Assembly: GCA_002189035.1 (NCBI GenBank)
Contig: NEEC01000016.1
Location: 496,001-560,000, forward strand
DNA length: 64,000 nucleotides
Source of the DNA: Utricularia gibba
Lineage: Eukaryota; Plantae; Magnoliophyta
Reading direction: 5' to 3'
Shown: piece by piece, positions 46,613 to 62,907 of the stretch
How positions within the stretch are numbered: the stretch's first letter is position 1
How the letters are laid out: each line of letters opens with the position of its first letter
The notes under the pieces: model-generated
Told to the model about the DNA's origin: nothing
Databases searched by the model: none
Seen by the model: only the letters and a program-made list of their open reading frames with translations
Translations under genes and position numbers: made by a program

Positions 46613-47771
46613 AGCTGCTGCCAATATACTGTGCTAATGATTATCTAATTATTTTTTTCGATAACTATTTCTCTAAATATTTTTAAATATAATTAACATA
46701 TTTATATAAAAATCATTCGTATTGCATAATAAAATTATTGATCAACTATTTTAATAAAATTAAAAACAAAGTCTTAAACTATTTAATTTTAAATCTCATT
46801 GAAAGCGACGTTTTCTGATAGAATTTCGCATATATGATGCGTCTTCTTCATTTATGACCGCTTTTGTGGGCCCACCCACAAATGAAAATACGAGGATGGA
46901 TTATAATAATTCTACGGGGTTTTATTAAAAAAATACGTCATTGTCCAAGTATTTTAGAAGTAGTTAGATAAATGCGTATTACTATATTTAATTATAGTAT
47001 AATTGGATATATGTATATTTTTTAATTGTATATAACGTTGTATATACAAAAATAAAATTCTGAATATGCGGATAATATAAATGTAATTAACTCTGTATAT
47101 TATTCATATATTCAAAAAATTAGTATAGAAAATTATATAGTTATATAAAAATTATATGCATATACTAATTAATATAAGAGTGATTTATATTTAATTTTAA
47201 TAAACATATATTATATTATATTATAAAATATATTTTTTAAAATCGTTAAAATTAAATTCTATTCAATTTAAACGTGGGACACTGTTTAAATAATATTTTT
47301 ATAAAAATTAAGTTTTCTAAAAATAAAAAAGAGAGAAAGTATTTGATTCAACATCATGACTTTTTGGCATGTCCAAGAGGCAGGCCTTGTTGTACGTTTC
47401 TCAACCGCAATCTGATTTCGGGTCTTCTACCTACCTCATTTATTGGTTTTTCCATGCAAAAAAATAAATCATATTTATTGGATTTATTTCTTTTAATTTA
47501 ATGGAAAAATATTTTTCAAAAATTATTTATATTTTCATTTAATAATTTAATTTTTAGAATTTAAAATATAATAATTGTTAATAAAAATTGTGTCAATGTA
47601 ATCATATTGTTATAAGGCAAAGCATGGACAGAGTTACTAGGTCTTGTTACCAATGGTTAACTCTTAATGCAGGAGGTGTCTGAAAGCAGCTCTGTGATGT
47701 TTTGCTTGTTGATGATGGATTACTCAGAGGGAGATTTCATTCGAGTTTGTGGTTACTGAAAAGAAACTTCT

Positions 47772-50022
47772 CTTTGATTCTGATTTGGAGAACATGGTAT
47801 GGATTCCAACACAAAAGGGGATGGTGGGATAACTGAAACATGCATTGAGAGTGTTAATTGCGACGGCGGCAGTTTCTTCTGATCTCGCCGGCGGTGCCTG
47901 TGAGGGGGCTGAGGTTTCCCATTCTCACCATCGTCTCAGAGAAGGCCCTCCTGAAGGCGGCACCGTCGGTGGCGAAATGCTGAACAACGGAGTCGGTGGA
48001 GACGTTGTTGAAGATCTGCTGGTCGGAATGGAGAAGGCCGCGACGGTTCACCAGGTTCTTGTAGTAGTTGTTGTCGAAAACCGCGGAGGGGACGTCGAGT
48101 GGGGCGAGGTTGGAGTCGCCGCCGGTTCTGGGGCAGTTGGCTCGGAGCTCGGCGGCGTAGGTGGCGTTGATGTTGGACTCGTTGTAGATGCGGTTGCGGA
48201 AGAGGAAGCACTGGGCGAAGCCGATGTTGTGGCCGCCGGAGAGGATGACCATGTCCCGAGCGGAGAACCTCTTGGCGGCGAAGGATCTGACGAGCGCCGG
48301 GAAGTCGGATAATGGGGACGGGATATTGGAATTGACCTCTGCTGGGGTGGCGGGGTTGAGGGCGTCTCTTCTCCCCAACGGAACTTCCCATCGTGGGCCT
48401 CCCAGCTGATGGATCACAAGAGAAATTCAGACCTCAAATGCCAGGAAAGTTTTTATTTGCAGAAGGCTTACCAGTTCGACTCCGTCTCGTGCGGCGATGG
48501 CCAAGATATCTGCGCAGGAGACGGTGTTAGCGCACTCGGCTTCCACTCGGGTTTTGATGTTGTCGATGACATCGAAGCCCCTCAGGGAGTTCCGATTGGG
48601 AGCGGCTCCCTTTTCTCCAGGCGCTGAGGAGGTGCTGTCCAGCAGCACCGATCCATCACATCCCTGAGGATCATACCAAAGCAGACGGTGAGTCAGTAAT
48701 CAATAGTGAGCTGATTTCACTAGCAGCAATGGGTCTGGTAGCCCGCTTACATGAACGAAGCAGTCATGGAAGTGCATGCGGAGGATGGAAGCCCCCATTC
48801 TCCTCTCCTCGAACACGGCGTCTGTCATCACTTCCCTCACGATCTCCTGAAGATCGGGGCACGATGTTTCGTAGAAATCCCACGACAGCTGCGCAGAGGC
48901 AAAGCCCAGAGCAAGCGCAGCCATCAGCAAGAAAACCTGAAGACTCGAAGAAGAAGCCATTGTTTGCTGAAAACCCAAATGCTGCTGAATGCTTGCTGCT
49001 TGCTGCTTGCTGCTTGCTGCTTGCTGCTTGATGCTTCTGCATGGGTGTAGGGCTGCTTTTATAAACGCGGGGCGCTCAAATATTTCAACACGGGCTCCAC
49101 CCCCTCCGATGCCGGAGAAAAGGTGCGTACGGCGTTCAAAGCAGAAGAGCATACCAGTTGACTCTGTGTCTGCCGCCGTGTACGTTTCTATTCACAAATG
49201 AAGTCAGACAAATCTCCTTCTGTACGTTTTTTCAACGCGGGGTGAGGACGTGGACACGTCAAACATAGCGGCAAGGCCACCATTACAATATAATAATATG
49301 TTTTTCTCCAATTTCTTGTAGTTTTGAGCATACCCATTGGCACAAATATAACAAGCCTTAGCATGTTATTTCTTATGATAGATAGCTGTGTTCTTTATTT
49401 TATTGAAATTAAGAATACAATGATTCATATAAAATATAAATACATAATAAACGTGAATTATATTAATAAAAATTTAACTTTAACATACCATTTTAATCGT
49501 CCTACGTGGGATTACTTGCTCTAATAATAATTGTCTCGTTTTTGTTTAGGAGCCCATAACAAAACAAAAGGAATGGCAAACCACAGCTAACTAACTTGCC
49601 TATTACACATGATGCGTTTCAATGTAGTTTATGTACCCTTTAGATTTGGGTGGTTTTGGTAACATGGTACTTGAACAATTTCTACTGATGCCACTTTGAT
49701 GAAAACGTTTGGCAGATGCGAATTACTCTGCTGCTAAATCTGCTCTTACACTAAATGTGATGGAGTTGGACGTTTATTGATGCAAAAGGATGGCAGATTT
49801 CAGTACAACTCAATGCAATAAATGGACATATGCATAACAAACAACACCAGAACAAAGTTTCACCTTCATCCAGAATGTAAACCTAACGACAGAATAGCAA
49901 CTGATCCTAACAAACTAGAGCAGCAACAGGTTACGAGGAGGGGAAGACAAGACTCGTGTCTTTAACCCTTGGAAGTGTGACTGATCAACCATCAACTTAC
50001 CTTCTAATTCATGTTCATTTAC
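47772..50022. repeat. ~2.25-kb near-identical inverted repeat arm (partner 56961-59210) covering P1 or P4 plus promoter
   Basis: Identical translations in all ORF-track frames (e.g. 48700-49152 vs 57830-58282, 49324-49524 vs 57459-57659); by eye I found only a 1-nt homopolymer difference near 49240. Confidence 0.9.
47854..48960 (-). CDS. Class III secretory peroxidase, copy P1 (3 exons, 317 aa)
   Basis: Signal peptide, [26 protein letters not shown]|[46 protein letters not shown]; all 8 Cys present; the usual third intron is absent. Confidence 0.95.
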
Positions 50023-60406: not shown

Positions 60407-60828
60407 AAAACTCATAAATGGTTCCACTGCAATCCCATCAGAGGCGTTTCGACTGCATGATTGTCTACCAAGAAGGCATGTAATAAAGTAACATGAAGAT
60501 TTTGCTTCAATCTGCAATCTTGCAAGAGGGGAATGATAACCACCAAATGAAAACTCTTTTTATTATGAACTCAAGTAGCAATATTGACATCCACAATCGA
60601 AACCACAGGTTACATAATCACTCCACAATGACAAAATAAGTTGCCTGAGAAAGCTGCTAAGGAAGCGATTCCCTAGCTTGGTACACAGGTAAGCACTGCA
60701 AAACAAAGCAAAACCATGACTTGAACCGTATCTGCGATGAAATGTATCAGCTCCTTGCAGGGACGCCCTTTGGCATGATCCATGCTACCTATTATAACTT
60801 ATATGGTACATGGTGAACGATTGGGGAA

Positions 60829-62907
60829 TCAACGATTGTGCCTCCCATGAAAACCTCCTCTATTCTTGGGAAAGAAGGCCTTCTTTGGTTTAGGAATCTC
60901 ATGGATGTCCATCACCTGAATGGTTCTTTGCTTTTTGGCTTCATAGTTCGAAATTGGGACAGAAAAAGTTTGTGAGAAAGCGAAATCAGGATATTGGCAA
61001 TTGTTGAAAGAGGAGTTTCAGAGTAGAAAACACACCATTCTCAGCTTCTTGGTAGTTTTCATGGAGCCGCCTTCTAGCTGAATTTAATCTCTCATCATCC
61101 AGAACAGGGTCTGCTCGTTCCCTCTGCACAAAAATGCAATGATCTAGTTACCCATGATTTGGGCTATCTCTTAAAGACAGAAATAGAAACAGAAACCATC
61201 TTTTTGTTTTTCATCTAGAACAAAATCTGCTGTCACTTGATGTATCAGATCCGTCATCAAAGTGCAAGCTATACTAATGCACTGACTTGAAAAGGTCATA
61301 GAGACGAAAAATCAGAAGAGGATGCTCAGCGTTAGTACCCTGGGAGTTGGGGCTGAGGAAGACTTGGGATTTGAAGGTGGTGGCCTGGATGGGGTTTCTC
61401 TCCGGGCCACAGATCGAGGCTGTTTGTGCTTCGGCTCATATTCAGCATGATTCCTCTCTGAGCTAGAACACCTATCTATTGAAAAACACAAAGCTGAAAA
61501 CCTCAGTCTCACGCACCCCAAGTATTCAGTGGTAAAATAGTGGAACTGTCATAAGAGATTCAACACTCACTCATTGGATTCGGGGAGTAACCAAAATCTG
61601 GAACCTACAGAGAAAATTTTCAAAAGATAAAGCAGCAGTATTAAATCCAGACTTCTCCTTTTCATTCTGCTTAATTTCCTTGTTTGACCATTTTTACTCA
61701 TCTCTTTCATGCAGGAAGAAAGTTCGCAAGAAGGAGCAATTTCCTATTCACCTGGTAATGACCATTTTGATGATTTTTGGAAATGTTTTGCTGAGGAGAG
61801 TCCACATCTGCTGGTGCCATCATCATTATCCCACAATCATTAAATCTCATATTCATAAGTAGCCATTTACATCCAATAGTATCTTAGACCTAATTCATAC
61901 TACATTATGGGGCAAGTTCATGATCCAAGCATACATTACCTATTAAGTTCGAAGTTGTCTCGGGTTGGTTCACCTTCACCCATTCATCCACGATTTCCTT
62001 CCACTTTCTGAACTCCAAGAGATAAAAATGGAATCATTCAAAACTCCAGAATGAACATTTATAAAACATAACAACCAGCTGGGGTTTAGAGAAACCTGAC
62101 TAGCTGTTTCACCAATCTACGAACTTCACCAGACTCATGCTTCCTCAATCGATTTACATGTCTTCCAATATCAGTTTCCTAGATAGCATTTCGAATGTTT
62201 CAAAATATCCATCTTTCCACTCCTTATAAAGAATATAATCTTTTGTTTCCTTAAAAGATACATAAATAAACATCAAGGAGTTTAACCTTGAGAGCTTGAA
62301 ACGTTATATCCATATCAGCTAAGGTTTGCAGTAGATCCATCACAGAATCTTCACTCTGAACAGCAACAGATTAATCATGTTCCTCAAAACATTGCTCGAA
62401 AAAGGAATTAAAAGTTAAAACCTGCTCAGAGTCTTCAAGTTGCTTTTTTATGCTGAGAATTGTGCTCTGTTCATCATCAAACAACCCACCATAGGGATCG
62501 AGATCATCACCATCATCCCCTAAACCACTAAAAGTTCTATGATTTGATTCAGGGGTCAACGGACTTCGACTGTAATCCTTGCTCAAGCCTTTATTAACCC
62601 CATACCCTTCAATATCAATGCCTCGCTTCTTTTCACGCATTCCATGTGTATTATCCATATCATCCCCACTATCACTAACATTCTCACCAAACACTCGACC
62701 TTCGTGGTTCACACCGCTCCCAATTCCACCATCACAGTTCTTGCACAGTTTCGAAGACGGGGCGTACAACAACTCAACAATTCCATCTCGCCGGCGGCGC
62801 AGCTCCTCGCCGTAGTCCGAGCTAGCCACCTTAATCGCAGCCTCAATCATATCCCAAATCCCCGCCCCGGATCTCGACAAAACCGCCAGAAATTCATCAG
62901 GATCCAT
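60829..62907 (-). CDS. MED26: Mediator subunit 26-like (TFIIS N-terminal domain) protein, ~9 exons
   Basis: [25 protein letters not shown]..., [15 protein letters not shown]|[14 protein letters not shown]...LVR|[25 protein letters not shown]|[18 protein letters not shown]. Confidence 0.9.

Follow-up and report, generated by a model that had tools for sequence, protein, structure and literature searches.

A tandem pair of head-to-head peroxidase cassettes with opposite internal orientation in Utricularia gibba, and their probable history of inversion and gene conversion

Results

Opposite orientation of the two interiors

The stretch of 64,000 nucleotides (nt) of Utricularia gibba DNA analysed here (GenBank assembly GCA_002189035.1, contig NEEC01000016.1, positions 496,001 to 560,000; hereafter the window, to which all coordinates refer) carries two tandem units, each made up of two class III peroxidase genes in head-to-head order, P1 and P2 in unit 1 and P3 and P4 in unit 2. 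Read as its reverse complement, the interior of unit 2 (54609-59210) corresponds to that of unit 1 (47772-52068), with the flanks of the two units in direct orientation, and this correspondence goes far beyond chance. The history which we regard as likely combines a tandem duplication, an inversion by homologous recombination (HR) between the inverted genes and repeated gene conversion, and would have left an arrangement that is now fixed and does not act as a switch. The layout was obtained by self-BLAST, repeat finding, a four-way MAFFT alignment in sense orientation and gene models, all of which are in agreement, and it bears out the description given in an earlier reading of the letters without database searches (the sequence-only reading), in which direct flanks enclose interiors where P1 matches P4 and P2 matches P3 in inverted orientation.

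Both interiors are bounded by inverted-repeat arms of ~1.33 kb, ~96% identical, which begin ~140 nt before the ATG, take in a TTTATAAAAG box and extend 82 nt beyond the stop codon. The segment between the arms measures ~1.7-2.0 kb per unit and the whole cassettes 4.3-4.6 kb. The promoters A and B, which lie upstream of the two genes of a unit, are unrelated sequences, and the interiors are colinear in reverse throughout, including these non-homologous promoters and the centre between them.

The site patterns on the two sides of the repeat ends are opposite. Within the arms, 25 sites or indel events group P1 with P4 and P2 with P3, none grouping P1 with P3 and P2 with P4, and the promoters upstream pair like the arms, A with A′ and B with B′; this agrees with the earlier observation that promoters, 5′ untranslated regions (UTRs) and intron 2 match in inverted orientation. 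Past ...CAGAATCAAAG the grouping is of the other kind from the first base onwards: P1 goes with P3, and P2 with P4, at more than 40 sites, the opposite type being absent; the sequence continues with AGAAG in P1 and P3 and with TGAGT in P2 and P4, so that the direct match of the distal 3′ flanks, also described before, is exact to the base in the alignment. Since the grouping of sites reverses at the repeat ends, the interior of unit 2 is inverted relative to that of unit 1. The orientation switch coincides at both ends with the last base of the inverted repeat, with zero bases gained or lost and the same junction sequences in both units; breakpoints at the ends of inverted repeats, free of insertion, deletion or target duplication, are as expected of an inversion by HR. 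With the switch placed at the last repeat base at both ends, a direct duplication together with recombination between the two inverted genes of one unit, as the sequence-only reading had it, remains the most economical explanation. An inversion across both units, by recombination of P1 with P4, was also considered and is ruled out by the direct orientation of R and L′, the right flank of unit 1 and the left flank of unit 2.

The same reading had held that the inversion swapped which 5′ half joins which 3′ end and produced chimeric alleles, which is overstated: all informative gene-body sites follow the promoter, the whole gene to 82 nt past the stop codon stays with its own promoter, and the crossover did not split genes into halves. 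Core promoter, 5′ UTR, coding sequence (CDS), introns and the first 82 nt of the 3′ UTR all lie within the arm. AATAAA is absent from these shared 82 nt of the 3′ UTR; in the R-type flank the first AATAAA occurs 136 nt past the stop codon, and in the L-type flank there is just AATGAA, at 113-114 nt. The flip moved complete transcription units, and, with the distal 3′ UTR presumably located in the flank, what changed partner was probably confined to this distal part or terminator and to the adjoining neighbours. As promoter, CDS and proximal 3′ UTR travel together, a flip would change little.

Divergence of the copies and probable gene conversion

In global alignments L and L′ are 95.6% identical, B and B′ 95.8-96.4%, and R and R′ 98.3% and 90.6%, with 95.3% for the distal R block; the Jukes-Cantor (JC) distance is alike, ~0.045, for L, promoter B and the distal R block. 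A and A′ are 100.0% identical over 1,006 nt. The identity extends over P1 with A and P4 with A′, amounting to 2,250 nt from 47772/59210, which is the repeat end, to 50022/56961, and is interrupted by one difference only, a single C in a C-run (49242/57740). Read-derived contigs of two sequencing runs described below carry the longer C-run at 57740, the X1 contig being anchored in unit 2 and that of X2 in unit 1; the shorter form seen in P4 is perhaps a slip of the assembly.

This tract takes in ~0.9 kb of promoter A beyond the arm and both introns, and selection on the protein therefore cannot explain it. On its 3′ side it ends at the limit of homology and on its promoter side at a 75-bp indel, past which homology of lower identity goes on (local alignment score of 50, where 300 shuffles gave at most 21), as expected for the edge of a conversion tract. 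An identity of 100% over 2.25 kb, non-coding DNA included, next to neighbouring blocks at ~95.5% and against a divergence of ~4.5% elsewhere, calls for a separate recent gene conversion, and bears the signature of a recent conversion tract laid over an older copy that was already inverted. The account by a single duplication and inversion put forward in the sequence-only reading is supported as to the inversion, but has to be supplemented by this later event.

The variable sites of the arms form blocks in which P3 alone differs, P2 alone differs, or A-type sequence differs from B-type. These site types are strongly clustered, with 31 runs against 51 expected and none of 20,000 permutations as low, which is the pattern of a conversion mosaic. 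P2 does not differ from P1 and P4 in exon 2 or over much of exons 1 and 3, and groups with P3 in intron 2 and promoter B; in the last 89 nt of the arm P1, P3 and P4 are identical and P2 shows six differences. Repeated non-reciprocal exchange between the copies is the simplest reading of this mosaic. The 89-nt tail of P3 was also considered as the mark of a crossover near the stop codon and was dropped, since it shows 0 differences where ~4 would be expected and the tail of P4 is of the A type as well, both of which point to overwriting by later conversion.

Joints in read-derived contigs

Contigs (Logan, k=31) from four public runs (X1, X2, X4 and X6) were placed on 54401-60400. The joint between promoter B′ and the insertion found only in unit 2 (56512/56513) is bridged by contigs from X1 (56281-56845), X2 (56445-56807) and X4 (56288-56600), that between the unit-2 centre and A′ (56960/56961) by contigs from X1 (56916-57939) and X4 (56846-57319), both with 0 mismatches, and that between L′ and the P3 tail by a contig from X2 (54404-54697) with 0 differences. 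A further contig from X2, of 1,250 nt, represents the unit-1 version, running from A to B via the unit-1 centre; words of this centre are present in X1 (0.64) and X2 (1.00), both of which thus contain both centres. Contigs from X1 and X4 stop exactly at 59210, a branch point. The A region forms one unbroken contig of 980 nt in X1 and X2, whereas the variants of B/B′ and P2/P4 are split into short contigs, which indicates that A and A′ are truly identical in the reads. Misassembly is unlikely, given that the unit-specific joints recur in read-derived contigs, although these joints do not link orientation, the 89-nt tail common to P1, P3 and P4 being longer than k=31.

X6 bears the same species label (depth ~51). 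Over the 1.2 kb at 59207-60400 it shows 15 substitutions relative to the window and lacks 24 bp at 59237, making it clearly a different accession or a close relative. It contains the unit-1 centre and has almost no depth on the unit-2 centre. Dating of the inversion by means of X6 was abandoned, as its contig begins only 4 nt inside the repeat and links nothing. An exact 26-mer of the shared 3′ UTR gave zero matches in JGI metagenome contigs.

Genes and other features of the locus

The coordinates of the repeat blocks and genes are collected in Table 1. The diverged centre is flanked by a 75-bp piece occurring only in unit 1 (50023-50097) and by a 316-bp AT-rich piece occurring only in unit 2 (56513-56828).

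Table 1. Repeat blocks, coding sequences and neighbouring features of the two peroxidase units (positions in the window)
Feature	Position	Strand	Description
L flank, unit 1	47621-47771		direct repeat of L′ (95.6% identical to 54454-54593), downstream of P1; adjoins the inverted-repeat end
P1 inverted-repeat arm	47772-49102	-	TATA region, 5′ UTR, gene and 82 nt of 3′ UTR; identical to P4
P1 CDS	47854-48960	-	
Promoter A (upstream of P1)	49103-50022	-	not homologous to B; 100% identical to the reverse complement of 56961-57879
Centre, unit 1	50023-50224		75-bp unit-1-only piece and ~130 bp weakly matching the unit 2 centre
Promoter B (upstream of P2)	50225-50753	+	~96% identical to the reverse complement of 55920-56512
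P2 inverted-repeat arm	50754-52068	+	peroxidase gene, from alignment and gene model
P2 CDS	50868-51986	+	
R flank, unit 1	52069-53513		direct repeat of R′; distal block 52909-53513 matches 61169-61887
Inter-unit spacer	53514-54453		940 bp, unique in the window; contains X8-domain gene fragment
X8-domain gene fragment	54306-54446	-	C-terminal part, PF07983, E 1.2e-6; in the spacer
L′ flank, unit 2	54454-54608		direct repeat of L
P3 inverted-repeat arm	54609-55919	-	B-type body and promoter; last 89 nt identical to P1/P4
P3 CDS	54691-55808	-	
Promoter B′ (upstream of P3)	55920-56512	-	reverse complement of promoter B, ~96%
Centre, unit 2	56513-56960		316-bp unit-2-only piece (56513-56828) and ~130 bp weakly matching the unit 1 centre
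Promoter A′ (upstream of P4)	56961-57879	+	reverse complement of promoter A, 100%
P4 inverted-repeat arm	57880-59210	+	peroxidase gene; arm limits from alignment
P4 CDS	58022-59128	+	
R′ flank, unit 2	59211-61887		direct repeat of R; EC1-like gene and distal block 61169-61887
EC1-like gene	59960-60406	+	intronless; Pfam Prolamin_like PF05617, E 2e-10; in unit 2 only

According to the gene models P1-P4 are four intact genes, each with three exons and 317 codons, and all introns are of the GT..AG type. The P1 and P4 proteins are identical, with P2 1 and P3 10 amino acids away from them; P1 differs from P2 at 17 nt and from P3 at 35 nt, mostly synonymously. Exon 3 matches Pfam PF00141 (E 4e-42), and the translations carry the distal Arg/His motif RMHFHDCFV, GGHNIG, the proximal His and eight conserved cysteines, a domain and motif content by which the four predicted products are class III plant peroxidases. 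A protein search placed their nearest database relatives among the P7-like peroxidases of Nelumbo and Amborella, at 62-64% identity for exon 3, no protein in the database searched being more than 64% identical to exon 3. In the 5′ UTR, a microsatellite of the heptamer CAAGCAG is 28 bp (four units) longer in P1 (48975-49016) and P4 (57966-58007) than in P2 and P3.

The EC1-like gene that the sequence-only reading had placed in unit 2 is corroborated by its match to PF05617 (E 2e-10); an exact look-up of the intronless protein returned zero records in the collections searched. The corresponding stretch of unit 1 (52358-52908) consists of 551 bp of AT-rich, microsatellite-like sequence; the difference goes back either to loss of the gene in unit 1 or to its insertion in unit 2. 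The label 'MED26', which had been given to a gene at 61169-62976 on the minus strand and which is peripheral to the claim, could not be confirmed: its first open reading frame (ORF), of 196 amino acids, has no Pfam match and only weak, unrelated Atlas neighbours. In the inter-unit spacer, contigs of X2 and X6 follow the sequence to 54433 and then run into DNA absent from the window, indicating a second copy of the X8-fragment DNA elsewhere. Possibly the 940-bp spacer is filler taken up where the duplicated units were joined.

Discussion

Proposed history

According to the history that we favour, an inverted duplication of a ~1.33-kb gene segment would have given rise to a head-to-head pair with two unrelated upstream regions, A and B, and this pair would then have been copied in tandem together with its flanks, the non-coding blocks of the copies now being ~4.5% apart. 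In one of the units a crossover between the inverted gene copies would have flipped the interior, leaving the flanks direct. The same recombination machinery would still be exchanging sequence between the copies without crossover, i.e., by gene conversion, producing the mosaic arms, and the latest event would be the copying of 2.25 kb between P1+A and A′+P4, in either direction, onto the mirror copy in the other unit. We infer the order of these events, and their assignment to crossover or conversion, from the arrangement and breakpoints, the mosaic, the identity step and the contig joints that were observed. The arrangement seen today most likely arose in the past and is now fixed, and does not represent a regulated or fast-flipping switch.

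A reversed order, in which the copies were homogenised while still in direct orientation and the inversion came only very recently, is less likely, since the tract would have to end by chance no more than 5 bp from the repeat end; L and L′ differ right past the repeat, so that such a stop would be a coincidence, and conversion after inversion is therefore preferred.

Several points weigh against the proposed history or limit what it can specify. The centre (50094-50224 versus 56829-56964) is only 80.8% identical (JC 0.22), for which a simple history has no account. The comparison covers the two paralogous units of one assembly, and either of them may be the flipped one. Later conversion has overwritten the arms, the last 89 nt being the same in P1, P3 and P4, and with them the position of the crossover. 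Among the samples behind the contigs, S2 is possibly the source of the assembly and only S1 and S3 are possibly independent; contig depths of 3-10 are too low and noisy to confirm a twofold copy number of A. Finally, one replicative event that duplicates and inverts at once leaves the same product.

Alternative explanations

The sequence-only reading had regarded each head-to-head pair as an invertible cassette. That these pairs, or the 2.25-kb P1+A / A′+P4 repeat bracketing 6.9 kb, still invert, with isomers that coexist or segregate and reshuffle the pairings of promoters and 3′ ends, is unlikely in our view. Substrates for it are present and recent exchange between them is seen (the 2.25 kb at 100% and the mosaic conversion tracts), crossover is an alternative outcome of the same intermediates as conversion, and recurrent inversion between homogenised inverted repeats is known from a 24-kb region in yeast (PMC9731477) and from humans (PMC3961182). 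Against this, the two arms of a unit match at only ~96%, their longest stretches without a difference being 263 bp (P1/P2) and 113 bp (P3/P4), and so do not provide the long near-identical repeats of an active switch; no recombinase-like gene occurs among the ORFs inspected in 47.6-62 kb. The alternative joint is unseen, but contigs at k=31 could not show one. A flip would also have little effect, with promoter, CDS and proximal 3′ UTR moving as one, and in yeast the orientation is reported to be stable on laboratory timescales (PMC9731477). The best present substrate for inversion is not the cassette proposed earlier but the perfect 2.25-kb repeat, which brackets 50023-56960 (6.9 kb). It is improbable that nested live inverted repeats cross over in germ line or soma and that plants carry several isomers of the 4.3-4.6-kb cassettes and of the 6.9-kb segment; if this were true, the promoters of the peroxidase genes would come to be combined with other 3′ ends and other neighbours, and active switching is in any case unlikely to matter functionally.

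An origin in one step, with duplication and inversion brought about together by replication template switching between the inverted arms (fork stalling or break-induced replication), appears quite improbable to us. Switching between arms would be expected to yield flanks that stay direct and an interior whose reversal starts precisely where the repeats end, and the inter-unit joint, which holds 940 bp of foreign DNA including an X8-domain gene fragment with another copy elsewhere, resembles the filler of replicative or end-joining events. Nothing sets such an origin apart from the two-step history, the divergence of flanks and of promoter B being the same under both.

It is very improbable that the arrangement is an assembly artefact, whether by misorientation of one interior, by the joining of two haplotypes in tandem or by filling in of P4+A′ from P1+A: repeats of this kind are error-prone, and the C-run that makes the sole P1/P4 difference, contradicted by the X1 and X2 contigs, indicates that small errors exist, but the 64-kb window contains zero Ns, contigs from three samples reproduce the unit-specific joints (one of them, anchored in the unit-2 centre, extending 980 nt into A′ with 0 mismatches), both centres occur in the same samples, and the units are not simple alleles, unit 1 having no EC1-like gene and a truncated distal block followed by 940 bp of unique DNA.

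Consequences for work on the cluster

Under the proposed history of duplication, inversion and conversion, the locus offers a base-resolved example from a plant nuclear genome of inverted gene duplicates reshaping a tandem array, in which one crossover flips a promoter-gene cassette and conversions erase divergence, that of promoters included. Trees and dating of the four peroxidases will mislead. P1 and P4 are inseparable in short-read mapping and in per-copy expression analysis, and their transcripts can be distinguished only via the distal 3′ UTR. The perfect 2.25-kb inverted repeat also predicts a further structural variant, an inversion of 6.9 kb.

Comparison with known systems

With tandem arrays of class III plant peroxidases (P7-like or PRX52-like) the genes described here share the PF00141 domain, the motifs, the three-exon structure and local duplication; they differ in having no relative above 64% identity in the protein database. 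Plastid inverted-repeat flip-flop and site-specific switches, in which both isomers occur in one individual, depend on very long identical repeats or on a dedicated recombinase, and the likeness of the locus to them is one of geometry, namely a segment lying between inverted repeats.

Closer parallels are found among inversions by non-allelic homologous recombination. In the 24-kb flip/flop region of Saccharomyces chromosome XIV inversion has recurred between homogenised inverted repeats (PMC9731477), and human polymorphic inversions are mediated by inverted repeats of 1.6-24 kb (PMC3961182). Common to these and to the peroxidase locus are a segment bounded by inverted paralogous genes, breakpoints within or at the end of the repeat, unchanged sequence and repeats homogenised by conversion. 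In contrast with them, the two orientations are found here in paralogous tandem units of one genome and not as alleles, so that neither recurrence nor polymorphism is implied, and the case comes from a plant, with short repeats (1.33 kb) and a small segment (~1.7-2.0 kb).

Arm-to-arm conversion in sex-chromosome palindromes (PMC3403216) likewise involves gene-bearing inverted duplicates, an abrupt change between diverged and identical sequence, and tracts that form a mosaic. The peroxidase locus differs from these palindromes in that its latest tract joins arms of different units, 8.5 kb apart, and takes in a promoter, with the arms within a unit at ~96%. In conclusion, the locus is a further case of the known inversion between inverted repeats, here in a plant gene cluster, and belongs to ordinary repeat-driven evolution with no new mechanism.

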